Shown here piece by piece: positions 1,895-44,976 of a DNA stretch of 64,000 nucleotides; the stretch's first letter is position 1, and every line of letters begins with the position of its first letter. The DNA lies in NCBI GenBank assembly GCA_004764695.1, contig SMSO01000035.1:186001-250000 (forward strand). The letters are read 5' to 3'. A model generated the notes under the pieces. The model was not told where the DNA came from. It made no database searches and saw only the letters and a list, made by a program, of their open reading frames with translations. The stretch comes from Schizochytrium sp. TIO01. Taxonomy: Eukaryota > Protista > Bigyra: Labyrinthulomycetes. Both the position numbers and the translations under genes were made by a program.

Positions 1895-4800
1895 TCAAAT
1901 CTGAGCCTTGTGAATTGGTGCGAGGTCGCCTTGGTCGTCATCGTCAGAGTCAGGGTCAACCCAGTCAGACGCGATGGGTCGAATCGACAATGTTGAAAGC
2001 CCTTCAACAGGTGTCACAGCAAAACCCAGCATCTTCGGTTGGTGTGGGGACTTGGTTGGGGAGTTGGTTGGGCTTACTTTTGCCTCAAAAGTCTCGTCGA
2101 TTTGCAGAGAGTTTCGCAGAACACTCGTCTTGTTACCTTGGACAAACACAATTTTAGGGAAAAAGATGAAGAACAAAGTTGTAAAACTACAAACAATTGC
2201 GAAGACCGCAATAAGAGAGAACCTTGAGGTGGATGAACTTTCAACAAGGAATACGATTGGCATGACAAAGGCATACGGCACAATGCATGCCACAAGGGCA
2301 ACCCCAACGTATCGCGCCTCACTGAATGCGGTTTTGAAGTTAATAGTACGAAATGCGTAGACAGATCCCATAACACCTGCAATGCCATGAATGGAGAGTA
2401 GCAATAACATATAACTGCTAAAATGTTGCGAGGTGCATTGCCCGTAACTTTTAATTGGGAAACCAAGCTGGTCAGTCACAATATCATGACGGGCATAGTA
2501 TGGAGTGTCATACCAAAACCAAACCGCACAAACAATCAAATCGGCACCAAGATATTTGGCACATATACGTAGCTTCTGATAGCGTTCCAATGTAATTCGG
2601 CGTAGCGCTCGACCATCGTAATCTTCGGCAGTCTTGTGAAGCTTAGCAAGCAGTGGTGCATAGGATAAGACAAAACCAAAGCAATATGTTACGATTGACC
2701 CCATACATCCCAAGTCTGCGTGGATATTTCCGCCATTTTCATCCGCCCGATTGGAAACATCATCCTCCAAACCGTTAAGAAGAACATTCATACCAATGAT
2801 ACTAGTACCAGTAAGTAGCATGAAGAGAAACTGGAACTGGGATGTCTGGAGGACGATGTGAGAGCGACTCTTTACAATCCAGCCCACAAGTCCAAGCTCG
2901 ACTGCCCACAGGAGTACAGTTGCGCAAAGTCCAACAGTGTGAATTTCTTGAGGAATTAGAGACAAGTCATCACTGGCGTATGTGCTGATTTCAAGGGGAA
3001 GTGCAGTTGCAACGTCCCATTGTAAAGTTCCTTGATCACTGAGAAATCGAATATGAGCAAGCATGGTATATTTGCCTTCAGCAAGATTGAGTAACTTGGA
3101 AGAAGTAGTGAAGTGTGGCAAGTCCATATCACCCTCTCTAGTTAACTCATTTGGGAGAGTGTTACTATGGAGATCAACACTAAGGCCACGTAAAAACGGA
3201 GTGCAAAATCGAACCTTGCGGTTGCAAAAATGCAAATTGACATGAGGAATATCAACTTCATTCATAGGCGAGAGCCAATGTTTTCCAGCTTCGATAGCAT
3301 TCGGATCATACTCAGAGCCAACCTCTACTCGTATAGACACCTCAAAATCTTGCAGCTGCTCACGTCGAAGGGGGAGTCTTGGGTGATTAAGAAACCTCAA
3401 ATGAATACCACTTGGGCATCTTGAAAGGGGTTCGTGGACTAGTCTTGGTTCGCCAAGCTCGTTATTGACAGGGGACACCCAACAAATGCTTTCATTGAGA
3501 TGACCCAGGTGATAGCCTTCCTCGACTTCGGTGGATTTTCCAGTGGAAGATAAACTTGGTCCTTCAGATGCCAAAACAGATACTGCGAGACTCTTTGAGG
3601 CCAGAATACGTTTCTCGCCATCTGAACTAGTAACCAAGGAAGAAACTACTATAATATAATCCCCAGTTTCTGGAATGCGTCCAGTAGCTTCAAAGCGACC
3701 AGCAGAAATCTCATATGTTGGAAACATTCCCATAACTGACTCAGGTGAGCATACAGTAGTACCTGCACGGCAATACACAGCCTCGCTGATAGAGCTTGGA
3801 ATCCATGACGATGTTGTGTCATCATCACCATTAGCTTGGAGCTGAAATACGAATGGCCTTGGAACACCAGCAAGAAAACTCACTGAGGAGTGATCATACG
3901 CATCTCCATCTTCTTGAATTGGGGTTCCTGCAAAGTCCACCGTCATTCTCATCTGAGAAGGACAGCTAACCATGCGAGAAGTTTCTTGATTGGATTCACC
4001 AGAGGTGTATTCTCGACAGTTCAATTTATCTATGTCACTAGATTTCTTCGTTGGTGTCCCTGCAGTGGCGGCTGGCATACTTGTTTTGTGAGCAATGCGA
4101 GCAATGTTGTATTGAACTTTGTCTACAGTCAGTACTTTGGCGTGAACAAGAATAGTATCAAAAGATGCTTCCATAACAAATCTAAGGCGCGTTGAATAAA
4201 CGCCAGTAGACTTTAATGAGGTAATAAGAGCCGGATTATGAATGGGACTAGCTGTAAAAGAGTTTGCAACGCCAAGTGGAGGGACACAAAATGGAATCCC
4301 AAATTCACATGCGGAGATTTGAACCTCCGCATACGTTTTGGTAGCATCACTGACCTCAACCAACGTTGAACAATTACCGAGATGATTGGGACACTCTGAA
4401 GATCCAAGAACAAGGTCTACTCGAGGGAGATAAGTGCGTCCAGTGACTAATTCCATGGTAATATTAGACTCCAAGATTACATTGAGTCCCATTGGACAAG
4501 ATGCGAGGAGTTCGGGTTCACCATTGGTATACTGCGTATGTTGAGGATCATGATAGGTCACCCAACATGTGGGTTGCTCAAGGTGTCCCATGTAATATCC
4601 TGAAGGTGCCTCCGATGAAGGCGTAAGGCCTTCTAGTCCATCCAACGGGGGCTTCGAACCACCACCTGCAAAATGAACTGTTTTTGTAAAGGCCCAGATT
4701 TCGCCAAGCCACTCTGCCACATTTTCAAGTTTATACCCTAGGGAGTCTCCGCCTACAAGGTTACGTAAGTAGACTGTCATTGTGGAATGCAGACGCCTAC

Positions 4801-5965
4801 CATAATTGTCAAAAACAATAAGCCCAGAAGTTCCTTGGAATGAGGTTTCGGCCATTCCAGAAGACTCGACTTGGCCTAAACTTGAGCACATTCCAAAGCC
4901 AAGCGCCGCAATTCCATCAAATGCTAAGCTTGCACTGTCATCGAGACGTAGATCAACATCAAACCCAGAACGATTAACAAGCGATGAAATGGTATTGGAT
5001 GAAGCATTATCTAGCCAGCGAGAAAGGAGTTCCCAGGGCTTCTTGTCTTTTAAAATACTGGTCTCTAACCCGCGGCTTGAAAGGTACAAAGACCCCTCCA
5101 ATGGTACAGAGGTTGCAGTCTGAAGAGTTTTCGAGTCCAACATATCTGTGAAAGTCCAAAGCCAACCATCCCCAAGCATGGAGTATTGGCTTGCAAATTT
5201 AGTAACTGATGTGAATGAGTCCTCGCTTACAGCTGCAAGAATAGAGCGAAGCCCACTGCGGCGAGCAGCCTCGACCGCTACTTCTATCGCATTTATATCA
5301 TTTGGAATGATTTCAAAAGGAACAATTTTTAGCGAGGGCGACCGCAACGTAGCTTTCTCTAAGCTAGCTCGCCACGCAAGCCCCGTAGGACTTTGTTCGT
5401 AAAGAAGGATAATCTTAGCGTGGCCGAACCTGCTGTACAAGTCCATGACTGCATCTGCAGACTCATGTGTAGGGGCGGCGATACGAAATGAATTCGGGGT
5501 CAGACGATGTGATGCCACAGCTTCAGAACTGGTTTCAGCATCAGTTGACATGTATGGAATATTCAGAGCGTGCGCGGCCAACGCAAGCCCTGAATGGCCA
5601 TGCTCGTCATGACAGTTTGGTCCAAAAACTACATCAAGTTGTGAGATATCGATTTGATTTTCAAGTTCTCCTTGCTGGCAATCACTGATATTGAGAAAGA
5701 TGGTTTCGATGGTTCGACTGCAATCCTCTATAGTAGCAAGCTCTTCAATAATACTATCGTTGCGCTCATTGAAGTGCTGGCTAGCTAGAGCTGTAGTCAC
5801 CATCGTAGATTTCCACTGTTGATCGTCGTTCCATGTTTCTGTTTCGTGAATAAATACTCCCACTCGAAGTTTTCCAGTTGTAGTTGCTGCCTCAATGTGC
5901 CAATAGTTTGCCACACCATGGAGAGCAACCGTGAAAACCATAGCAAAACGAAGCATGCTTGGCAT
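1895..5965 (-). CDS. Class C (GABA-B-like) GPCR: signal peptide, Venus-flytrap/ANF-receptor domain, three repeated extracellular modules, 7tm_3 domain
   Basis: Hydrophobic N-terminus; VFT-like motifs (VVFGPNC, ALNIPYMS, FRIAAP, AFDGIAALG, SFQGTSGLIVFD); seven hydrophobic segments with class C motifs C..FGFVLSYAPLLAK, FSEARYVG and TLFFIFFPK. Confidence 0.85.
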   Translation of the reverse strand: MPSMLRFAMVFTVALHGVANYWHIEAATTTGKLRVGVFIHETETWNDDQQWKSTMVTTALASQHFNERNDSIIEELATIEDCSRTIETIFLNISDCQQGELENQIDISQLDVVFGPNCHDEHGHSGLALAAHALNIPYMSTDAETSSEAVASHRLTPNSFRIAAPTHESADAVMDLYSRFGHAKIILLYEQSPTGLAWRASLEKATLRSPSLKIVPFEIIPNDINAIEVAVEAARRSGLRSILAAVSEDSFTSVTKFASQYSMLGDGWLWTFTDMLDSKTLQTATSVPLEGSLYLSSRGLETSILKDKKPWELLSRWLDNASSNTISSLVNRSGFDVDLRLDDSASLAFDGIAALGFGMCSSLGQVESSGMAETSFQGTSGLIVFDNYGRRLHSTMTVYLRNLVGGDSLGYKLENVAEWLGEIWAFTKTVHFAGGGSKPPLDGLEGLTPSSEAPSGYYMGHLEQPTCWVTYHDPQHTQYTNGEPELLASCPMGLNVILESNITMELVTGRTYLPRVDLVLGSSECPNHLGNCSTLVEVSDATKTYAEVQISACEFGIPFCVPPLGVANSFTASPIHNPALITSLKSTGVYSTRLRFVMEASFDTILVHAKVLTVDKVQYNIARIAHKTSMPAATAGTPTKKSSDIDKLNCREYTSGESNQETSRMVSCPSQMRMTVDFAGTPIQEDGDAYDHSSVSFLAGVPRPFVFQLQANGDDDTTSSWIPSSISEAVYCRAGTTVCSPESVMGMFPTYEISAGRFEATGRIPETGDYIIVVSSLVTSSDGEKRILASKSLAVSVLASEGPSLSSTGKSTEVEEGYHLGHLNESICWVSPVNNELGEPRLVHEPLSRCPSGIHLRFLNHPRLPLRREQLQDFEVSIRVEVGSEYDPNAIEAGKHWLSPMNEVDIPHVNLHFCNRKVRFCTPFLRGLSVDLHSNTLPNELTREGDMDLPHFTTSSKLLNLAEGKYTMLAHIRFLSDQGTLQWDVATALPLEISTYASDDLSLIPQEIHTVGLCATVLLWAVELGLVGWIVKSRSHIVLQTSQFQFLFMLLTGTSIIGMNVLLNGLEDDVSNRADENGGNIHADLGCMGSIVTYCFGFVLSYAPLLAKLHKTAEDYDGRALRRITLERYQKLRICAKYLGADLIVCAVWFWYDTPYYARHDIVTDQLGFPIKSYGQCTSQHFSSYMLLLLSIHGIAGVMGSVYAFRTINFKTAFSEARYVGVALVACIVPYAFVMPIVFLVESSSTSRFSLIAVFAIVCSFTTLFFIFFPKIVFVQGNKTSVLRNSLQIDETFEAKVSPTNSPTKSPHQPKMLGFAVTPVEGLSTLSIRPIASDWVDPDSDDDDQGDLAPIHKAQI

Positions 5966-33118: not shown

Positions 33119-33773
33119 ATAGCCCTTTAAGAAAAGAGTGCCCCCGCGAAAACACACTCATGTATAGGCCAGGGCAAGAGAAGAGGAAATAGGTTAAGCC
33201 ATATCTGTAGCGTGATACAACAATCATTTTGTTTTGAGCTTTGGTGAATAAAGTTCCGGGTTAGCAGTCAATGTGCATGCCCTTCTTTGCATTTTTGCCA
33301 AGCCTTGAAGAAAGAGGTGTTTCTTTTTTTAACTTTCCATAAAGTGTGCTTGCATGCAAGCTTTGGTCTTGGAGGAAGACGGGAACTTTTTCTGAGGCCT
33401 CCTCTCACAGACACAGTCGTTCTAACGTTTTGTAGTTGAGTACAGTTGCATTCTCCATTTAAAGCAACAAAGAGGTAGCCCTGGATGCGATGACCCGAGG
33501 CCGATTCATTTGAACCTTGATCATGCTACAGCAACTGGGCAGGGAAGAGCGTACGGGATAAAAGAAGAGACAGCGTCAGGGGCAGCGTGGCGTGGCGTAA
33601 CGTGACGCTGCGCTCGCTGCCCAAAGTTGCTTACCTTATTTAAAAAGAGTTTGTAGTTACAGAGAGCCTTAAGTAGTTGAATTCTATTCTAGCAGAGCCA
33701 ACGCAATAGAAGCTATCAAGACGAAGTAATCAACGTGAGCGAGGCCAATACTATTTGCTTATCTGCTGGTAAT

Positions 33774-36700
33774 ATGTCATCTGCACGCAGGATAACGAGG
33801 TTGCCAAGTAGTTTTCATTTTAGCTTTGGTTCAGAAAGGCAAGCTAGACCTAGGCTTGAAAGCTTGTTTTTTAGTAGCTCTCCTGCTGAAGATGACAATT
33901 GGCGCACGTCTGCCCTTGCAAACCCAATAGAATACATTCGCACAGTTCAACATCACAAAAAAGCGATAAGAAAACAGTCGCAAACTGAGGAGCGTTTATC
34001 TCAGATTAGCAGAGCTTACAACTCGCCTGAAACAGACTTGTACCAAGATAAGAGGAGTAAAAATGGAGATCCTCGTAGAAGAACTCAGCAAGTAACCCCA
34101 TTTGCTGCAGACCCATCAGAGCATGTACTTACGAGCTCCACTTTCGAAAATGTGTCCCACACGTCAACTTGGGCTCATTCAATTATGGAGGCTTTGCCGC
34201 ATCCTTTTCTAGCAATTTGTTGCATACTTTCGATTGCAGTTTCCATTCTTATATTATGCTTTCCATTGTCATTCACAAGCACCTTGCATCACCACCGTTT
34301 ACTAAAGTTCAGTATATGTCTTGATACAGTCTTTTGTATCCGACTTTATCTGCAAGTTTTTCATCGCAAACGAGGAACGGAAGAAGGTACCCTCGGCAAG
34401 TTTACTCGTTATCCACAATGTCCAGTAAGGAGATTCCATAGTAAGGAGCTATTGTTCGACATCTTCATAGCGTTGCCACTCACTAGCTCCGGTCTAGGTG
34501 TTTATCATTACGGCTTAGCTAAGGCTGGTTCGTTTACGCGGCTCATTGCGGTTGTTCCTTTTCTTCGAAATGAAGATGCTATTTATAAATTTATTGATCG
34601 TGTTTTCTCAACCCATAGAGGAAACTTGCGTCGTATCGTGCGTTTGATGCTACGTTTATTACTGTTGTGCTTTATGCTTGGCGGACTATTTTATTGGGTT
34701 TCCTTTACTTCAATGACAGACGGAAACAATTCTGTACCAACCCCAATAAGAAAGAATGAAACTACTAGTACGCAGCCCTTTCAATTTTCAGACGATGGAC
34801 TTGCTGCTGATATTCTCACATCTTTCTATTTCATCTTGCAAACCCTCCTTACTGTCGGCTTTGGTGATATTCTTCCGGGTAACATGGGACAGTTAAAATT
34901 TGTGATTGTATGCTTCATTTTTGCTGTGGGAGTACATTCATTACTGATTGCTCATATGTCTGCGTTGCTAAAAAATCTGGATGTCACGTCTGCACATTAC
35001 AAGCATAAGGTGGATTCGATCCTGAAATATCTTCGTGTGCGACAAATACAGCCTGAAGTCCGTAACAAAGTAACAGACTACTTTAATTTTTTGTGGGAAA
35101 GGCAAAAAGGTCGCCTTGAGAACAAAATCCTAGGCCCATTACCTCCAAGCTTGAGAGAGAAGATTAATCGCGGACGGCGAAGCGCTTTACTACAAATTCC
35201 CTTTTTTCAACGTCGTGATATGACATTTGTTGACGCAGTCGTGACTTCATTGGAGCCTCAGATCCTTAACTTTGGTGAGTTTCTTTGTATTCGCAACCAG
35301 CCTGTTGACGCATTATTCATTCTTGGTGATGGTAAATTGGAAGTATTGTCAGCAGGCCGTGGTGATGGATGTACAATACGGGGAATAGGGCGTCAAAACT
35401 CGGGTTTCTTTGCGTGGAATAAATCAAGTCAGGCTTATTTGTCTCAAAACAGCAAGTCCGAGTCGCAACTGCACTGTAAAGTAATTGAGAGTATTTCTCC
35501 TGGTCCTATGGGGTTTGTTGGGGATGAAATTCTGTTCTCTAGCACATTCAAGCATAAATACTCAGTGCGGGCCACTCGTATGTGTGAAATTCAGCGACTG
35601 GATATCGAGGTGTACCATTTCGTGTTAAGTCTCTACAATGCATATACTCCTCCCGAGAGCCAAGTCTCCGCTATTTCGATGCAAGCTTCGATTTCGGATA
35701 GAAATGACGATGAAGAGGATCCACCTGACATTCTATTTACTAAACCTGTCGTTTTGCCAGAGGATAACCCAAACATTGGAGGGTTTCAGCTGCAACGAAA
35801 GCGATTGGGCAAACAAAGACGCTACAGCTCATTGGCCTCGGCGGAAGTCATTCAGGATGTTATCGCAACACAAACATCTGCCAAAGGTATTTTGAATAAT
35901 GTCAACGCTCAGCACGCGCCTCTTCTCGATCGTACTCCTGACATTCCAAGTGCATCTGGAGGTGTTAGAAGAAAATTAAGCTCGAGTTCACGATATGCGA
36001 CATCGAAAATTTCAAGTAAAATTTCATCATTGGCCCGCAGTACAACTGTTACAATGAGTAAATTTACTTCGCGCTGGGATCCTGCTGGACGGCGTCGCAG
36101 AAGCTCAGCTAGTAGCTCTGGCTCTTCAAAAGGTGATGAAGAATCGAGTAATATATATTGGCCAAACATTCCTGAATATTTTGAAGTGACGAGTCATAAG
36201 CAACTATCTTCCATAGATACACTCGTTCGTGATGAGGGAGTTCTACGAACTGTTCAAAGCTGGCAGGGTCGTGGTGAAGCGCGCGATAAAAAATCGAAAG
36301 CGAGCAAAGTTGGTCGAAAGTTTACCTTTAGATCACTTTCGATAAATACCCAAAGATTCGGCATTTGCGCTCCTATTTTAGTTTGGGGGGAAGTCCTTAT
36401 CACTAATTTGTGGGAATTGATTGTTGATATCTCAAGGCGTTGTTGGACTCGCATTGCATGGAGTGCAAGCGTGGTTTTTGCCCATTTGGTTCTTTGCATG
36501 CTTCCAAGCTTTGATTTGGCAGCAGTTTCTATCAAAGCTTCAAAAGAAGCTCTTTTGCCGTGGCAAGGCTACCTTTTTGCTGATATCCTAGTATTCGCAA
36601 ATGTCACGCTTCTACCTAAATTTGAGCCAGCCTCAAATGTTAAAGTGCACAAGAGGAATAGTAGGTCGACTGGTGCAAAGGTTTCTCCGAAAGGGATGAT

Positions 36701-39700
36701 GCGAGCACAAAGTACAGTGACCGAAAATGGATACTTGGCATCTCCATTTTACACTGTTCGTAAGGTTGCAGAGGTAATCCGCAATCGTGGTCATCAAGAG
36801 GGCACTATCTATGGAGTCCTTTTTCTGGTTGATTGTGTTGCATATGCTTGTTTTGCAAGTGGTCTAATCAAAACTTGGGTGTATCTGCGTATTTTTTCTT
36901 GTGGTGTGCTCTTTTGGCCTTTACTCAATCATGAAATTCAGCGTTTGGGCTATCATTTTGAGAAATTTCAACGCATGACCACCCTTCAGCACGTAGCGAT
37001 AAAAGTGGCCACCATTGTTTTAGTCAGCGGGCATTGGTATGCTTGTTTGTGGATCTGGAGTCTCGCAAAAGAGTCGGTGGACTCCTCTGAAGAGGTTCTT
37101 AGTATGGTAATGAGCAATTATTGGAAATCTATGTATTGGGCTTGTGTAACAATGACAACCGTTGGTTATGGCGATGTGGTGCCTACCAATGACGCTGGTA
37201 GGATTTTGGCAGTGGTTGTTATGCTTTTAGGCGTTACAACTTATGCAGGGTTTATTTCTCTTGTTGCCGCCATTACTCAAAGCGGGGGTGCAGCAACCAA
37301 CCAGTTTGAGCAATTTGAAGAATGTTGTCGCCATTACTTAACACAGCGAGACATTCCTCGCGAACTGATTAGTTTATGCCATCAATTCATCGAACACGCT
37401 AGCCAACATCAACAAAGACTTGATGAAACGGAAATGCTAGCTAAAGACTTCCCCACATCACTTGAAGACTGTGTTCGTGATGAAATTCTTGGGAATAGGT
37501 TCCTCCATACGTCTTCAATCTTTGTGGATACTCCTCGTCCTTTCATTCGGGACCTACAACGCTACATGCGAAAGGAGATATTCCTTCCTGGTCAGGTGAT
37601 TACATGTGGTTATGACCCTGTAACAGGGAAAAAACGTGGGAGGCCGGATGAACGTGGTATTACTGATGGCATGATTTTTCTCGAAGAAGGGGAAGCGGCT
37701 ATTACTAGCTATGCTGAAGATGGTACCAAGAAAAAAATGGGTAATATAAATACTGGTCGAACATTTGCTGCAAACGCCCTTTTCAAACCTGAAGATCAGC
37801 ATCTGGAGCTTTGCGCCACTAAAATTTGCGAAATCTGGGTTTTGACGTCTAAAGACTTACACAATTGCGTAAGAAATTATGACGGAGGTCACGCAGAAGA
37901 CAGTGTTCTTGCCGCAGAGGAGCAATTGAAGCTAGAAACGCTAATAATGTCAACAGTTCGTGAAAGAGCACAGGCTACAACTTCAAGCGCTGAAGCGGTT
38001 GCTAAAAACCTTGCAAATGCGAAATTGAATAAGTTCATGGTTTCTTCGAGGAAATTCACAAGTCACGTCCATGATTGGGGCATCGTTTTGCCTGACTCCA
38101 AAATTTACAAGGGGTGGAATCTTTTGATGGCTGCGTGCGTCGTTGGTAACATAGTATCAGCGTCCTATCGTGTGGGCTTAGGACGGGGAAGTGTTGGAGA
38201 GAGCCAATCCAAAGGTATGACGGCGATTGATGTCCTGATCGATTTTGTGTTCCTTCTGAACGTAGTCCTTCGTGATCGTTGCTTTGCATGTGAAGTAGAT
38301 GGGGTGATGTTATCCCGGCGGCCACAGGTATCAGCAAATTACCGAGCTCGGAACGCTCGTTTTGATTTATTTTCTAGTATTCCGTTAAGCTTCATTATAC
38401 GTGCCGTGCTTGGGTGGCAAAGTTTAGGGTTACAAGAATATGCAGCGCTTAGGTTCCTATGTATTATTCAAGTATATAGGATGCCAGAGTGGGCTTCAAT
38501 CTGTATGAACATTACGCCAACAAAATATCAAGATGTAATGACCTTGAGCCTTCTCCTGGGTCTAATCCTGCTATGTGCTCATATCAGTGGGTGCTTCTTT
38601 TTTGGCATTGGGCGGTGGAATATGACGTCAGGAACCGGAAGCTCATGGGCCGTGAATAGCTCTGATCACGCTTTATTGATTTTCAATAATGCAACCGGAA
38701 TTTATGATGCAACTAAAGATGCATATATTCGTAGTGTTTACTGGGCCATGACAACTTTAACGACAGTTGGTTATGGTGACTATGCTGCTGCGGCAGATTC
38801 TGAAATATCATACAGTTTAATTATGCTGATGAGTGGAGGATGCCTGTATGCACTAATTTTGAACAATTTAGAAGAGATTATTGCTCATTCTGATATTTGC
38901 TCGATTCTATTCCAGCGTAAAGTTGATTCGATGGGAGTTTATATGAAGAAACGAAGCCTCCCTAGTGCAACAATACATCGAGTGACAAGTTACTATCATG
39001 CCCTATGGGTGCGTCAAAAAGGTGTCGAAGAGGCTTGGATTCAGGACCGTCTTCCTTTGCCCGTGCGAAGAGCTCTTCGCGCACACGCGTTGGGACTCAA
39101 TCGCCTCGCTAAATTTCCTCTATTCAATGACTGGGATAAAGTTGAAGACTTGGTTGATATGCTTCGTCCGTGCATGGCTCTAGAGGACACCCTTTTGTTT
39201 ATGGAAGGTCAGCTGATCTACAAATGTTACTTTGTAAGCGACGGTAAAGTTGAATACGTGTCTGGCGATGGAAGACAAGTATTTACGTCTTTCACAAGCG
39301 GCGATTCTTTTGGGGAGATCCAATTTTTCTATAACGAACAAACAGAGTGCATCGCTCGAGTTTGTGAACGTTCAGATTTTTTGGTTCTTCATCGAATGGA
39401 TATGGACCATTACCTACGTGAAAGACCTGATCTTGCAGGTCGCTATGAGAATGACCTAACACAGCTGGAGGGCGATTTACGTAAGCGTTGCTCTTTGGCA
39501 GCATTTTCTAAAAATCTAGAACGGAGCAAAGTCAATAAGCTGTTTGCTATGGAAGTAGTGAAGAAGGAAGGTGAGTTTTGGAAAGGATCCAAATTACTTG
39601 CGCCAAACAACGTATATAGGCGTTTGTGGGATATTTTGATACTCGGTGTTGTGTATTACAACTTGGTATTTATAATTTATCGAGCGTGTCTTTTACGAGA

Positions 39701-42365
39701 TGCGATTGCCGGAAGTGCGGGAGTTGAAAATGCATTCAAAGAATACATGCCGCTCGATATTTTTGGGGACCTTTTGATATTAATAGATGGGGTATTGCAT
39801 GCAACCGCTTTTGCAGTTGTAACTCAGACTTCATTTCTCTGGCGAAGATCTCAGGTGCAGGCTCACTTCCTTCGATATGAGCTTTGGTTCTATGCATTGG
39901 CTCTTCTTCCTTTGGACTATTTATTGCAAGCAGATTCTATCGGTAGTGCTTTTGTTCATAAATTAGGAGTGAACTCAGTGTTGCCATATTTTATAGGAAT
40001 TGCTCGTCTTCCACGACTCCTGCTCATATTAAGATTGCTTCCACTCGAGGTTTCTGCTCAGTCGTTTTTGGATGAATGTGGGGTTGTGCTAACTTCGGGA
40101 TATAAGCAGATCTTGCGCTTAGGTGTTCGCGCCTTGCTTATGGCGCACTGGATGGCGTGTATCAATACTGTTCTAAGTACGCGCTATCTCGAGCTTCTGG
40201 ATTCAGGGTATTCAATATTTGAAGCCTACATGGTGAGCTTATATTGGTCAATGTATACAATCACCACAATTGGTTATGGCAATGTAATGGTAGATGCTCC
40301 TACATTTGCGATTGGGTGTTTAATTATGGGAACTTTCATGTGCGATGCTGGAGTGACCGCAACGGTGTCCAATATTTTGTCGAATCAGGAATCTAAGCTT
40401 GGTGATGCAAAACGACGTCGAGTTGCGCTCACTCAATACATGAAGAGTCATCGAATCGATTCGGATACGAAATTCGATGTACTAGATTATATTGATTATT
40501 ACTCTTCGACGCTAGATGGACTTGATGAATCGATCCTTCTCAATGAGGCAAACTTACCATCACACCTTCGTTTGGAGATAGTTTCGCATATAACTCTACG
40601 ATGTGTTCCACACTTGGCAACCCATCCAATGTTCACTGGTTTCCAACTTGGACTGCTCCAAACTCTTGCTCTGATGCTCTCGCCTGTAGTTCTTGCGCGA
40701 GGACATGATTTGATTAAAAAGTCGAACAAGTCAACTCCTGGCTCTATGTATGTTAGCGGCAAATTTAGTTCCGGAACACAAACCAATCCTAGCTTAAGAA
40801 AAAGCACTTCAACGCATCATCACCACTTCCAGATGTTTGGCAATGCAGGGAACGAGGATGGTTCGTCGATGCAGTACTACCCAAGAAGAATGAACGAGAT
40901 TGCAGCGCAAGTGTCATTAGAGTATCTGCGAGAGGCAAACATAACTGATCCTAGCCACTCATTGTATCAAGCCAGTTCTGCGAATGTGGGTTGGCAACGA
41001 TATCCTGCCAACGCAGACGATGACAATCTGAACTTTCTGGTAAAAGGAACAGTTCAAGTCTTCTCAGGCTCGGCAAGCAAGCTTGTACGCCGTGGGTTGA
41101 TATGCCGTGGTAGCGGAATTGAGTCAGCAATATGTGCTACCCACTGTGAAATGTTTGTATTAGAAGTAGATCAATTTCATGTATTAACACAGTATTCCTC
41201 CCAGATTGGAGATGGAGCATACAAGACATTCTTGGAGCTTTTGCGGGATCCAACTGGTTTTCAAGCGGTTCAAGAGTACCTTAAAAGGCATAAAAATGGG
41301 GCCTACATGACTGATTTGGAGTTCTGGCGTGCGTGTGAACGATTTGAAAAGGCTCCGAATCATCATGAAGCCGAAGAAATCGTTGAAAAGTTTATGAAAA
41401 AGAAGCAGCAGCCTGAGGTTCTTGACGAGTCCTCGTCAATGAAGGCCCTGAAAAAGAATCGTAAAACCCTAGTCGCTGACGTCGCGATACAATTTGAGCT
41501 TGATTTTGGAATGATGGGAGATGAGATCCAGTTTCGTGTCGGAAGGGAGACAAACTTGCCAGGAGATATATTCATGCAGGCCAAAAACGATATCTTTCGG
41601 CGCTTGGAGCTTGTTGTCAAACCTCGATTCTTTGCTAGTGCTGAATTTACTATTCTCATGCTGGAGAAAATGAGCAACTCTGCTGGGAGCTCACAAGTTC
41701 CACAAAGGGCACGCAGTAAGTTGTCCACGGTCGAGTCATTAGCATCTTCTGGTCTCTCAAGCCCAAGATCAGCAAAATCTGTTCCTGATGATCTTTTCGA
41801 TCGAGAGAGCAGTGATTGGGGAGATCTTAAAAGTGCACGTCTAGATGATTCTTTTGGTCCTCACAATCGTGGGTCATTCATGAACACAGATGATGTGATT
41901 AATTCAGTCGAAAGTGAGACTTTGAGATCAATAAATCATTCTCAAGGTTTGGAACAAACTGTAGAGAGCCAAGTCAAGGCACCGAACATGCTTTCATCTC
42001 TTGCAACACGGCAGCCGTCGCGGCGAGCTGTGTCTATTATTGAAACTATGTCTCTAAGACCTGCTGAAAAGCACGAGGAGCTAAGAGGCGTCATCCGAAT
42101 GCCGTCACTCAGCAAATCTTTCTTTCTTCTTGAAGACGATGATAAAAGCATTGAGGACCATTCTCCAATTGAAGATACCGTGGCTTCATCGGGCCTGGCT
42201 AACTTAGAGCAACGCAATTGCCCAGCAAAAATAGAAAACGAAGGAGAGGAAGATGACGAATTTGAAGAAATTGAGACAATAAAGTTAACTCCACCTGAAG
42301 TTGGGGAGGTAGAGGAGGATACTGGTAAGCAGCATAATAGACAGACAAGCTTTCTACCGAAATAA
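33774..42365 (+). CDS. Single-chain four-repeat CNBD-family K+ channel (CNGK/tetraKCNG-like architecture) with C-terminal RGS domain
   Basis: First ATG at 33774 (the track's start is GTG). Four pore signatures: TVGFGD (34851), TVGYGD (37158), TVGYGD (38763) and TIGYGN (40266), each followed by S6, a C-linker and a CNBD-like region. RGS motifs FLELLRDPTG...YL, LEFWRACERF and IFMQAKNDIFRRLE....PRFFASAEF at 41226-41648. Confidence 0.92.
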   Translation: MSSARRITRLPSSFHFSFGSERQARPRLESLFFSSSPAEDDNWRTSALANPIEYIRTVQHHKKAIRKQSQTEERLSQISRAYNSPETDLYQDKRSKNGDPRRRTQQVTPFAADPSEHVLTSSTFENVSHTSTWAHSIMEALPHPFLAICCILSIAVSILILCFPLSFTSTLHHHRLLKFSICLDTVFCIRLYLQVFHRKRGTEEGTLGKFTRYPQCPVRRFHSKELLFDIFIALPLTSSGLGVYHYGLAKAGSFTRLIAVVPFLRNEDAIYKFIDRVFSTHRGNLRRIVRLMLRLLLLCFMLGGLFYWVSFTSMTDGNNSVPTPIRKNETTSTQPFQFSDDGLAADILTSFYFILQTLLTVGFGDILPGNMGQLKFVIVCFIFAVGVHSLLIAHMSALLKNLDVTSAHYKHKVDSILKYLRVRQIQPEVRNKVTDYFNFLWERQKGRLENKILGPLPPSLREKINRGRRSALLQIPFFQRRDMTFVDAVVTSLEPQILNFGEFLCIRNQPVDALFILGDGKLEVLSAGRGDGCTIRGIGRQNSGFFAWNKSSQAYLSQNSKSESQLHCKVIESISPGPMGFVGDEILFSSTFKHKYSVRATRMCEIQRLDIEVYHFVLSLYNAYTPPESQVSAISMQASISDRNDDEEDPPDILFTKPVVLPEDNPNIGGFQLQRKRLGKQRRYSSLASAEVIQDVIATQTSAKGILNNVNAQHAPLLDRTPDIPSASGGVRRKLSSSSRYATSKISSKISSLARSTTVTMSKFTSRWDPAGRRRRSSASSSGSSKGDEESSNIYWPNIPEYFEVTSHKQLSSIDTLVRDEGVLRTVQSWQGRGEARDKKSKASKVGRKFTFRSLSINTQRFGICAPILVWGEVLITNLWELIVDISRRCWTRIAWSASVVFAHLVLCMLPSFDLAAVSIKASKEALLPWQGYLFADILVFANVTLLPKFEPASNVKVHKRNSRSTGAKVSPKGMMRAQSTVTENGYLASPFYTVRKVAEVIRNRGHQEGTIYGVLFLVDCVAYACFASGLIKTWVYLRIFSCGVLFWPLLNHEIQRLGYHFEKFQRMTTLQHVAIKVATIVLVSGHWYACLWIWSLAKESVDSSEEVLSMVMSNYWKSMYWACVTMTTVGYGDVVPTNDAGRILAVVVMLLGVTTYAGFISLVAAITQSGGAATNQFEQFEECCRHYLTQRDIPRELISLCHQFIEHASQHQQRLDETEMLAKDFPTSLEDCVRDEILGNRFLHTSSIFVDTPRPFIRDLQRYMRKEIFLPGQVITCGYDPVTGKKRGRPDERGITDGMIFLEEGEAAITSYAEDGTKKKMGNINTGRTFAANALFKPEDQHLELCATKICEIWVLTSKDLHNCVRNYDGGHAEDSVLAAEEQLKLETLIMSTVRERAQATTSSAEAVAKNLANAKLNKFMVSSRKFTSHVHDWGIVLPDSKIYKGWNLLMAACVVGNIVSASYRVGLGRGSVGESQSKGMTAIDVLIDFVFLLNVVLRDRCFACEVDGVMLSRRPQVSANYRARNARFDLFSSIPLSFIIRAVLGWQSLGLQEYAALRFLCIIQVYRMPEWASICMNITPTKYQDVMTLSLLLGLILLCAHISGCFFFGIGRWNMTSGTGSSWAVNSSDHALLIFNNATGIYDATKDAYIRSVYWAMTTLTTVGYGDYAAAADSEISYSLIMLMSGGCLYALILNNLEEIIAHSDICSILFQRKVDSMGVYMKKRSLPSATIHRVTSYYHALWVRQKGVEEAWIQDRLPLPVRRALRAHALGLNRLAKFPLFNDWDKVEDLVDMLRPCMALEDTLLFMEGQLIYKCYFVSDGKVEYVSGDGRQVFTSFTSGDSFGEIQFFYNEQTECIARVCERSDFLVLHRMDMDHYLRERPDLAGRYENDLTQLEGDLRKRCSLAAFSKNLERSKVNKLFAMEVVKKEGEFWKGSKLLAPNNVYRRLWDILILGVVYYNLVFIIYRACLLRDAIAGSAGVENAFKEYMPLDIFGDLLILIDGVLHATAFAVVTQTSFLWRRSQVQAHFLRYELWFYALALLPLDYLLQADSIGSAFVHKLGVNSVLPYFIGIARLPRLLLILRLLPLEVSAQSFLDECGVVLTSGYKQILRLGVRALLMAHWMACINTVLSTRYLELLDSGYSIFEAYMVSLYWSMYTITTIGYGNVMVDAPTFAIGCLIMGTFMCDAGVTATVSNILSNQESKLGDAKRRRVALTQYMKSHRIDSDTKFDVLDYIDYYSSTLDGLDESILLNEANLPSHLRLEIVSHITLRCVPHLATHPMFTGFQLGLLQTLALMLSPVVLARGHDLIKKSNKSTPGSMYVSGKFSSGTQTNPSLRKSTSTHHHHFQMFGNAGNEDGSSMQYYPRRMNEIAAQVSLEYLREANITDPSHSLYQASSANVGWQRYPANADDDNLNFLVKGTVQVFSGSASKLVRRGLICRGSGIESAICATHCEMFVLEVDQFHVLTQYSSQIGDGAYKTFLELLRDPTGFQAVQEYLKRHKNGAYMTDLEFWRACERFEKAPNHHEAEEIVEKFMKKKQQPEVLDESSSMKALKKNRKTLVADVAIQFELDFGMMGDEIQFRVGRETNLPGDIFMQAKNDIFRRLELVVKPRFFASAEFTILMLEKMSNSAGSSQVPQRARSKLSTVESLASSGLSSPRSAKSVPDDLFDRESSDWGDLKSARLDDSFGPHNRGSFMNTDDVINSVESETLRSINHSQGLEQTVESQVKAPNMLSSLATRQPSRRAVSIIETMSLRPAEKHEELRGVIRMPSLSKSFFLLEDDDKSIEDHSPIEDTVASSGLANLEQRNCPAKIENEGEEDDEFEEIETIKLTPPEVGEVEEDTGKQHNRQTSFLPK

Positions 42366-44976
42366 ACATCCTGGTACATAAATTTAGTATTCCATTGAAT
42401 TAAAGGGCTTTAACAAGCTCAATCAGCTTTTGGAGAACTTTCATAGACCAAGAAATGGCACGAGGTACTATATGTCAAACCAAAGGAACTCGAGCTTTAC
42501 GAAAAACGATGTATAGGAACAATTTGTGACAAATGAGAGTAAAGTAGTGGGGAGCCACCAACTGCGGCGCTCGTTCAAGTACCTTAGTACGCTAGGCTCG
42601 TAGACAAACGTCACGCCTTTTAGATGACTCTTAGATAGAATCAGGAAAAAATCGTTTAGCCTATTGCTGTTGTATATGTAAGTGATTGTCTTGAGTTGAA
42701 ATTTTCAAATCCAGGCTAGAATAGAAGGTTAAAATAGAAAAGAAAGATATGGCGAAGAAGTTATTTACCTCCTAAAAGAATGTTACTAGTCCGGTGTTCT
42801 TGCACATCATGCTTCAATGCGAAAAACTATTACCTACCTTCCACAGAGAGTTGCTCTTTGAACGTCAACCAAGCTTCAGTCTTTTCACAAGCCTGGTTTC
42901 ACTGCGACATAATATTTGAGTACTTTTTCGGTTCTACTTACGTTTGTAAAGAGCTGATCAATCTGTTCAAAACTTCATAAAAACAGAAGAGCGAAAAAAG
43001 CGTGAGAAGAATGCTTTCGAAGTAAAATATATCTGCCATTGTCGCACGTGGATCTAACAATATATTTTTACTGGTGCTACTGTGACTGGTTAGGTTAGGT
43101 ACTACATACTACTTATTACTAATTTATCTTAGCTGTGAACTTTGTTCCGCGCGTGCAAGCTTCACTACGCCTGCATTGCACCCCTTTCCTACAACGATTA
43201 CTCCAACTGTCAAAAGAATCCTCTATGACTGTTGTTTATTCCTGCACGTGCCTTTTAGGAGGGTGCACAACGCACCTTTCCACATTTTTGTGTGTGTCAG
43301 GTCAGCCTCGTTCTCTGATTGTTTTTCGTTTGATACGAATCATGCACCGTTTATGATATAAATAGCCTCCGATGGCGGATATTCGCGAGTGGGGCAATAC
43401 TCGTACTCGAGCTGGGGCTTGTGTTTGTTGGTTTGATTTAAATTTGAATTAATTTAATTTTTTTTATTGTTAAAAAGCAAATTAAAAAAAATAAAATTAA
43501 CTCATGCTGGAAAAAATGTTGAATTTCTGTACAATGAACGAAGCATCAATGTCTAGGATAATGTACTACTGTCATATGGAAAACCTATCTTGGTAGAGAG
43601 TATTTTTAGGTTGAGACTATCCCTTTAAATGGAGATGGGGACTTTCTACTCAGCATTAAATGGTTGGAGATAACGAGTAAACCATGCATCTCTTTCAGGC
43701 GGGATTTTACAGTTCTCAGCTGCTATGCGCTATAATTCTCATTTCGATCCGGGTGCATACTAACTACTAAATGTTATGAGGTCTTAATATTTGCACACCG
43801 TGAAAATCCGGGCCTTTCATATTCCGATGTATCGGAGTATAGAGAGCTCAACACTTTCTAATCAATGCAAAAATCGTGTTGACAGGCATATAAATTTGCT
43901 TGGGCCTATTAAACTTCACAATGCCTTATATCTCGAGTTTTCATATGGTGAATCTTACCTCGAAGAGTTGGAATGGTGACTGTTTTCTAGTCAGTCACCT
44001 TCCCTTTGGAAAGCCTCATTTCAAATGTTTCTTGAACTTGAGAGAGAGAAGGATTCATCATGCTTTATCCAAAGGATTGATTTTTCTGTTTACGCAATGG
44101 TCTTTCCAAAATAGGAAAGGCGGTTGCTTGGAATCACTCGCTCGCTCGTTCGCTCACCTGTTTCCCATCACAAGGCAGTTTCGTCGCGTTCTCACGGCCT
44201 GTTGGAAGCAAACTTTCAATTTCCGGAAAGCCAACGAGTGATTCTTTCTTCTTACTAAGTATAGCATCTATCCTTGCAATATTAGGCTTCCTTGAACAGA
44301 TTCCTCAATAATAATGATTTCGAAGTGGTTTTTTACTTTTCATTTCATTTTACATTTTCTTGTTAATGAGCGCACACTCTCACCTTTCAATGTTGCAAGA
44401 TGGCCTGCGTTGTGTATTCTCCTTCATTTGTCATTTCGATGAAGTCAGCCTCAGCCTCGTACAAGGTTCAAGTCCTTCGCTTCTGATTTTTGGTCCAACT
44501 TAAACTCACTCGGTAACCTCCAATTGCCATTACTCGTTGCACCTAGGTAGGTGCTCTTATAAATGGTAATAATGTGAAAGTACCATGGTAGGTTAGTATC
44601 ATGCATGCTGAGAATTTTTTTTTCACCTCCGAAGCTTGATCTAGAGCTCAGCTTGAAGAGAACCTACTACGTGAAGATCAATCTTTTTTTTCAAGATAAG
44701 CTGGACGTGCTTATGGTCACGGATACAAAGTACTCCAGTGTTTCGTAGAAGAGCTCTGGAGAGCCCAAATATGCAATCATCCCCATCCTTTAAAATAAAA
44801 TAAAGGCCTGCATCTGAAAGAAATAAATGCCAGGCCCAGCTTTCCCTTCTACTCTCATTCTTCTTCTACTACTACTTCTTCTTCTTCTTCCTGTTAAAAA
44901 AAGATAATAATAATCATCATAAAAAGTACATATGATATAGTATTTGTCGAGTTCAATGGTCCCAGAAAAAGAACAC

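Follow-up and report, generated by a model that had tools for sequence, protein, structure and literature searches.

Ion channels couple to heterotrimeric G proteins via G-beta-gamma, second messengers or separate complexes that contain regulator of G-protein signalling (RGS) domains. GIRK, for instance, is a Kir-type K+ channel opened by G-beta-gamma, and separate RGS proteins in the complex shape its kinetics. Among channels with cyclic nucleotide-binding domains (CNBDs), the CNGK channels of sea urchin (ApCNGK), zebrafish (DrCNGK) and choanoflagellate (SrCNGK) combine four repeats in one chain, each with six transmembrane segments (6TM), a GYG/GFG filter, a C-linker and a CNBD, and cyclic nucleotides fail to open the zebrafish channel (PMC4749565). 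In fungal zoospores, the channel BeCNG1 takes part in signalling (PMC4046227, PMC9616733). Here we describe a gene from Schizochytrium sp. TIO01 whose product is a CNBD-family K+ channel with four repeats and a C-terminal RGS domain; the gene is located in a window of 64,000 nucleotides (the whole stretch of DNA that was analysed; contig SMSO01000035.1, positions 186,001 to 250,000 of the forward strand). The window protein resembles CNGK in its 6TM, pore, C-linker and CNBD repeats and its GYG/GFG filters, but neither CNGK nor BeCNG1 has been described with an RGS domain, and the window protein lacks the phosphate-binding Arg in every repeat. As with GIRK and its RGS proteins, a K+ channel and an RGS domain are brought together, and GIRK is itself G-protein-coupled; however, the RGS domain is separate from GIRK and part of the chain in the window protein, and the two channels belong to different superfamilies. 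In the 7TM-RGS proteins of the AtRGS1 type, RGS is likewise joined to a polytopic membrane protein (PMC3971589, PMC3386157), and in stramenopile cNMP-binding + RGS proteins the RGS domain likewise stands straight after a CNBD. The membrane part of these proteins is a receptor-like 7TM bundle or is missing, whereas the window protein carries a complete channel.

The gene lies at 33774-42365 on the forward strand, as do all its features given below, and comprises a frame of 2863 residues (stop included). It is contained in the sole open reading frame (ORF) of at least 150 residues between 32 and 44 kb (33735-42365, first ATG at 33774), and its DNA, of 43-44% GC, runs for 8.6 kb without a stop. 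A stop-free frame of this length with ordered domains far exceeds chance. No joints were found in the contigs of other sequencing runs placed over 37000-42900, which is consistent with an intronless gene, though these runs are only guessed to be RNA. We searched the protein with Pfam at curated cut-offs, first whole and then cut into five pieces. The whole protein matched Ion_trans (139 bits, four stretches), Ion_trans_2 (121 bits, four stretches) and cNMP_binding (85.7 bits, two stretches). In the five-piece search, Ion_trans and Ion_trans_2 exceeded the cut-off in all four repeats, while cNMP_binding passed in repeats 2 and 3 and stayed below threshold in repeats 1 and 4. The RGS domain (residues 2486-2625, 41229-41648) matched PF00615 with 34.5 bits in the whole protein and 39.6 bits in the C-terminal piece, against a cut-off of 23.9. 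It is followed by an acidic low-complexity C-terminal tail (41721-42362), in which Pfam recognises no domain. The anatomy is thus almost certainly that of a four-repeat K+-type channel with a C-terminal RGS domain, encoded by a single-exon gene. An earlier note, made from the letters alone, had proposed an intronless ORF of ~2860 residues with four channel repeats and an RGS-like domain at 41226-41648, and each of these points stands: the Ion_trans, cNMP_binding and RGS families are all matched, the C-linker and CNBD align with solved channels, and the RGS boundaries differ by 3 nucleotides, with the fold backed by the analyses given below.

Each repeat contains a transmembrane core followed by a more or less complete C-linker and CNBD. 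Specifically, the S1-S6 core of repeat 1 (34200-34976; Ion_trans at residues 143-401, 55 bits) carries the filter TVGFGD at about residues 360-365, and is followed by a degenerate CNBD-like domain (35211-35693) with a long insertion, which scores 16.2 bits in cNMP_binding against a cut-off of 27.5. The core of repeat 2 (36366-37283; Ion_trans at residues 1054-1169, Ion_trans_2 63 bits) has a divergent S1-S3 part and the filter TVGYGD at about residues 1129-1134; its CNBD (37662-37877) scores 31.3 bits. Repeat 3 has its core at 38223-38870 (Ion_trans at residues 1484-1699), the filter TVGYGD at about residues 1664-1669, and the best kept CNBD of the four (39186-39419, 39.2 bits). In repeat 4, the core (39753-40343; Ion_trans at residues 1994-2190) carries the filter TIGYGN at about residues 2165-2170, and the C-linker and CNBD-like domain (40365-41183) is interrupted by ~100 residues of inserted low-complexity sequence and ends ~20 residues before the RGS domain. 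All four filters conform to T-[VI]-G-[YF]-G, the K+ signature, and the S4 segments, inspected by eye in the translation, are charge-poor with one to three spaced arginines each. The pore, C-linker and CNBD of repeat 3 align with those of LliK (5V4S; E 8e-32), SthK (E 1e-28) and CNGA1 (4e-27), and also match CNGA3, TAX-4, HCN, KCNH and the plant channels SKOR/GORK and KAT, the matches to solved channels ranging from E 8e-32 to 1e-12. The C-linker and CNBD start of repeat 4 align with CNGA1, CNGA3 and HCN (E ~5e-5); for the C-linker and CNBD of repeat 2, a search of the PDB gave no match at E 0.01. These alignments identify the protein as a member of the CNBD-channel superfamily, with CNG, HCN, KCNH, SthK and LliK as relatives. 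The solved channels of this family differ from it in being homotetramers of single subunits without an RGS domain.

To find relatives of the fusion, we searched public proteins and the 64 Mb genome (37 contigs). In 5.8 billion proteins, the sole full-length relative is P0002 of the thraustochytrid Hondaea fermentalgiana, which shares the Pfam set, RGS included, and is collinear with the window protein (48% identity over 1239 residues spanning repeat 3, repeat 4, CNBD4 and RGS); its public name, "Potassium channel AKT2", omits the RGS domain. A metagenome fragment of the JGI (P0003, 272 residues) begins at the end of CNBD4 and continues into RGS. With the RGS piece as query, phmmer gave nothing beyond these two among 1.84 billion representatives, word-indexed protein searches returned only the protein itself, the Hondaea protein and two proteins that lack RGS, one from ENA and one from Chrysophaeum, and metagenome scans gave no match. 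The genome itself holds a paralog of 2554 residues (C32:2173354-2181018, equal to L012:855-8519, forward strand) with four Ion_trans, four Ion_trans_2, cNMP_binding and a C-terminal RGS domain of 63 bits. Repeat 3 of the window protein pairs best with repeat 3 of this C32 paralog (144 bits, vs at most 62 for its other repeats), and the GYGN filter of repeat 4 is common to both proteins, which indicates that the whole four-repeat + RGS gene was duplicated. Additionally, the genome encodes two four-repeat CNBD channels without RGS (2594 residues, L059:1259-9043, and 2239 residues, L060:1417-8136, both on the forward strand) and a two-repeat channel (1571 residues, L061:1731-6446, reverse strand), which makes channels with concatenated CNBD repeats a small family here. 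A full-length tree, which has long branches, separates the three RGS-bearing channels from the RGS-less four-repeat proteins of C30, C31 and the pelagophyte Chrysophaeum with a 98/98 split; this fits a single gain of RGS, before the gene duplication within thraustochytrids.

The junction was also examined in other public data. Contigs of four other runs (X1-X4), ~99.5% identical to the window, map onto the gene, and one of these contigs, 2165 nucleotides long, covers 40619-42753 unbroken, from CNBD4 through RGS and the stop codon into the 3' flank. Because the Hondaea ortholog and the C32 paralog share the architecture and an independent contig crosses the CNBD4-RGS junction, the channel-RGS fusion is, on this comparative evidence, not an artefact; it has persisted through the gene duplication and through a split at genus level. 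Among the listed strain differences, the three in the RGS helices are all synonymous, and the two non-synonymous ones within the RGS domain both fall in an inserted loop; the remaining differences listed lie mostly in the disordered tail, where the X1 and X3 contigs carry a 30-nucleotide in-frame insertion after 42184, a length polymorphism between strains within the acidic tail.

To place the fusion among described proteins, we searched the literature for CNGK or Ion_trans combined with RGS, and for Phytophthora RGS combined with cyclic nucleotide-binding; no channel-RGS architecture is described within the literature searched, in agreement with the earlier note, which knew of no characterised CNGK-type channel with such a domain. 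The large ESM Atlas clusters contain no channel + RGS cluster, and the available part of the Aurantiochytrium zoospore proteome paper, text and supplements, makes no mention of RGS, Ion_trans or cNMP. The parts are all of known kinds; their combination is new and, as far as seen, confined to thraustochytrids. The covalent fusion of a K+ channel with an RGS domain provides a "Rosetta-stone" argument that both act together, and offers a compact system for asking whether G-alpha acts directly on a channel.

The cyclic-nucleotide sites of the channel are degenerate. Repeat 3 was aligned residue by residue with LliK and SthK, and repeats 1, 2 and 4 were judged against canonical CNBDs of the same genome. 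The phosphate-binding Arg is kept in none of the four repeats: its position is taken by Lys in repeat 1, Gln in repeat 2 and Thr in repeat 3, and in repeat 4 the helix of the phosphate-binding cassette is absent. Repeat 2 has lost the FGE motif as well, while repeat 3 keeps FGE but replaces the Ser/Thr after the Arg position with Glu; the Hondaea repeat 3 shows the same Arg-to-Thr and Ser/Thr-to-Glu changes. A regular-expression search for the canonical cassette (Glu ... Arg-Ser/Thr-Ala) found none in the window protein, the Hondaea ortholog or the C32 paralog. Since all four sites are degenerate, opening of the channel by cAMP or cGMP appears unlikely despite the CNGK architecture. A precedent is the CNGK of zebrafish, whose CNBDs are non-canonical and which responds to alkaline pH (PMC4749565), and KCNH and plant Shaker-type channels likewise have CNBD-homology domains without the Arg. 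The designation as CNGK-type in the earlier note is therefore borne out for the architecture and the K+ filters and not for an intact phosphate-binding cassette, so that the likeness is one of architecture only.

Next, we examined the fold of the RGS domain. A profile built from the domain, its two orthologs and the paralog matched RGS2 best in the PDB (E 1.4e-16), followed by full-domain matches to RGS1, RGS5, RGS18, RGS8, RGS16 and RGS4 with E-values up to ~1e-11, whereas axin, SNX25 and GRK scored 30-50 bits below these canonical RGS proteins. An AlphaFold2 (AF2) model based on 23 sequences shows the expected helices, with a mean predicted local distance difference test score (pLDDT) of 83 and a predicted template modelling score (pTM) of 0.76. 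A Foldseek search with this model against the PDB returned RGS domains, including RGS1, RGS8, RGS16, RGS9 and RGS4, for all of the top 30 matches (target-normalised TM 0.70-0.80). Since the sequence profile, the predicted model and the structure search agree, the domain is assigned a true nine-helix RGS fold. It shares this fold with the R4-type RGS proteins (RGS2, RGS1, RGS4, RGS8 and RGS16), which are its best profile and structure matches, and differs from them in being covalently joined to a channel and in two insertions. One, of 3 residues, precedes the F-W motif that is conserved in the alpha3-alpha4 region; the other, a loop of ~30 residues (41397-41498; residues 81-110 of the model, pLDDT 56-66), stands directly before the loop equivalent to that of N128 in RGS4, and is longest in the window copy.

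A further difference from the R4-type proteins concerns the residues that face G-alpha. We mapped the RGS4 positions by HMMER alignments to RGS2 and RGS1 together with a 23-row alignment, and compared three orthologs, namely the window protein, Hondaea P0002 and the fragment P0003, in an orthogroup defined by three to four sequences. E87 of RGS4 corresponds to T2513, a position occupied by T, A or S across the three orthologs. The other replacements are the same in all three: N88 corresponds to D2514, N128 to D2577, L159 to R2610, D163 to V2614 and S164 to V2615, while R167 is retained as R2618. Of E87, N88, N128, L159, D163 and R167, the window RGS thus retains R167 alone. Among 19 other RGS domains of the genome, in comparison, the canonical residue is present at E87 in 17, at N88 in 13, at N128 in 14, at L159 in 14, at D163 in 12 and at R167 in 14. 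Asn128 of RGS4 directly touches G-alpha-i1 (PMC7572916), and the conserved Asn is described as needed for the activity of RGS domains as GTPase-activating proteins (GAPs), which its exchange for Ala abolishes (PMC2900303); in a plant RGS, Ala at the equivalents of E87 and N128 removes both binding and GAP activity (PMC11061236). These exchanges were to Ala, while the window protein has Asp at the N128 equivalent. The residue pattern indicates that the canonical GAP site is lost and that a conserved alternative is in place, which is not decay. Given that every ortholog has other residues at the catalytic and contact positions, the RGS domain of the window copy is probably no canonical GTPase accelerator. 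The RGS domain of the C32 paralog retains E87, N128 and D163, and is for this reason the better candidate for true GAP activity. The paralog pair, with canonical versus remodelled G-alpha-contact residues, therefore offers a comparison for separating docking from GTPase acceleration.

The genome contains at least 13 full-length G-alpha genes, mostly intronless. Four of them lie within 26 kb on C30 (C30:1577709-1603772) and others on C8, C35, C24, C3, C7 and C13; the C8 copy, whose score equals that of one C30 copy, may represent a haplotig. Switch I reads R-V-R-T-S-G-I-V in most of these genes, and two (L008 and L035) have Arg at the position of Thr182. We considered these two as compensating partners of the remodelled RGS, but the idea is unsupported, since L159R adds an Arg to the RGS pocket as well, and no convincing change complementary to the remodelled pocket was found among the G-alpha genes of the genome. 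A complex prediction of the RGS domain (residues 2481-2643) with L001, the most canonical G-alpha of the genome, GTP and Mg gave 0.00 in both runs, which by the rule of the tool speaks neither for nor against binding.

In CNG and HCN channels, the helices that end the CNBD pass the effect of ligand binding on to the C-linker ring and to the gate, and an RGS domain that follows CNBD4 is therefore placed to influence gating. In such a position the domain must be cytoplasmic and lie beside the gating ring. We tentatively propose that the gating ring receives a docking or regulatory input from RGS in place of the lost cyclic-nucleotide input, a functional reading that we hold as possible and short of probable. 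On binding to the RGS domain, activated G-alpha, or a different partner of that remodelled surface, would bias the C-linker/CNBD ring and, through it, the gate, and the channel would also be located within a G-protein signalling complex. In this scheme the window copy would act without canonical GTPase acceleration, while the C32 paralog may still be a GAP. Taken together with the anatomy, a docking or regulatory RGS domain that is no canonical GAP represents our best explanation overall, to which we assign a little less than an even chance.

Several points weigh against this proposal. The AF2 prediction of C-linker4, CNBD4 and RGS, made from a 4-row alignment, has a pLDDT of 46 and is confident in the RGS part only, not in the geometry between CNBD4 and RGS. 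The runs whose contigs lie on the gene are only guessed to be RNA, and the orthogroup is defined by only three to four sequences. Moreover, the replacements E87T, N88D, N128D, L159R and D163V could, together with the inserted loop, abolish G-alpha binding altogether, and by analogy with the RGS-homology domains of axin and sorting nexins the domain might serve a role outside G-protein signalling.

The last of these possibilities survives best among the alternatives, although we consider it rather unlikely. The RGS domain would then no longer handle G-alpha, and would act as a lid or brace of the gating ring, as a site for another protein or as a membrane or lipid attachment. Such a role would suit the replacement of nearly the entire canonical G-alpha pocket and the long stem branch that leads to the window orthogroup in a tree of RGS domains, a poorly resolved tree in which 14 of the 20 inner branches are left open. 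Non-GAP RGS-homology domains are well known, those of axin, SNX25 and GRK being the weaker matches in our profile search, and De Mendoza et al. note some RGS domains that serve as scaffolds after the loss of their GAP activity (PMC3971589). However, in the three orthologs the replaced residues have been conserved and have not decayed, strain differences in the helix core are synonymous only, the canonical RGS proteins stand well above axin, SNX and GRK in the profile, and the sister paralog keeps residues of the G-alpha type. On a bolder reading, which we regard as unlikely, RGS would have taken over as the channel's ligand-binding domain in thraustochytrids, and the protein would be a G-alpha-gated K+ channel: activated G-alpha on the channel's own RGS domain, at the end of CNBD4 where the gating C-helix of CNG/HCN channels lies, would open or close the pore, with the C32 paralog as a GAP-competent, self-terminating form and the window copy as a GAP-dead, long-lived effector.

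The idea put forward in the earlier note, that the channel is both effector and off-switch of a heterotrimeric G protein, entails a working GAP that terminates the signal of the activated G-alpha to which it responds. The setting for it is in place, with a G-protein system of many G-alpha genes and a true RGS fold nearest to R4-type RGS proteins that are GAPs; R167 is kept, and the E87, N128 and D163 of the C32 paralog imply that the fusion may well have started out as a GAP. The off-switch is the part of this account that lacks support in the window copy. E87 (T/A/S), N88 (D), N128 (D), L159 (R) and D163 (V) are replaced there, vs the canonical residue in 12-17 of the 19 other RGS domains of the genome; the exchanges described above at the E87 and N128 equivalents of plant RGS, and the described necessity of the conserved Asn, speak against GAP activity, and the ~30-residue loop is inserted next to the N128 loop. 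A GAP in the window copy is thus doubtful.

Another alternative takes its lead from other RGS proteins of this genome, which has about 46 RGS matches. Three non-channel proteins have two or three good cNMP_binding domains and then an RGS domain ~20 residues after the last: L039 (568 residues, L039:1962-3665, reverse strand), L041 (750 residues, L041:529-2778, forward strand; CNBD to 579, RGS from 600) and L045 (664 residues, L045:1918-3909, reverse strand; CNBD to 448, RGS from 469). These proteins are candidate cyclic-nucleotide-regulated GAPs. In the channel, CNBD4 ends near residue 2465 and RGS starts at 2486, the same short spacing as in L041 and L045. The pair also appears in an ESM Atlas cluster of 336 mostly oomycete proteins, a lead only, and cNMP-binding is among the recurrent partner domains of RGS (De Mendoza et al., PMC3971589). 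CNBD4 and RGS could accordingly be a copy of this stramenopile module, in which a small ligand of CNBD4 would control RGS and the channel would be mainly a membrane anchor. Yet CNBD4 is the most degenerate of the four, with no cassette helix and the 100-residue insertion, and the RGS tree, poorly resolved as it is, does not join the channel RGS with the RGS of the cNMP-binding proteins; we consider this reading improbable. Finally, the reading of neighbouring channel and RGS genes as one frame, or an assembly chimera, hardly deserves credence: none of the RNA runs on record attests to one continuous transcript, but the frame runs for 8.6 kb without a stop, the junction recurs in Hondaea, in the metagenome fragment and in the diverged paralog, and an independent contig crosses it.

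The G-protein system of thraustochytrids looks unusually large and modular, a picture to which the locus adds, with at least 13 G-alpha genes and about 40 RGS domains joined to cNMP-binding, EF-hand, kinase, BAR/ArfGAP and voltage-sensor-like parts. A protein of 750 residues (L052:1771-4020, equal to C24:396270-398519, reverse strand) has a voltage-sensor-like Ion_trans part without a K+ filter motif and a canonical RGS end of 43.7 bits. Its S4 is very arginine-rich and is followed by more hydrophobic helices, and the protein may be a voltage-sensor-RGS fusion. Other architectures include RGS with a protein kinase, GRK-like (L054:1845-4115, forward strand), BAR + RGS + PH + ArfGAP + ankyrin (L056:2890-7278, forward strand) and EF-hands with RGS (L058:703-3459, forward strand). 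Within the window, the 21.6 kb downstream of the channel gene (42400-64000) hold no ORF of at least 200 residues on either strand and may contain intron-containing genes or be gene-poor, while the upstream part is densely packed with long ORFs. One of these, ~28 kb upstream of the channel gene (1898-5965, reverse strand), encodes a class C GPCR of 1356 residues with an ANF_receptor flytrap and a 7tm_3 domain.

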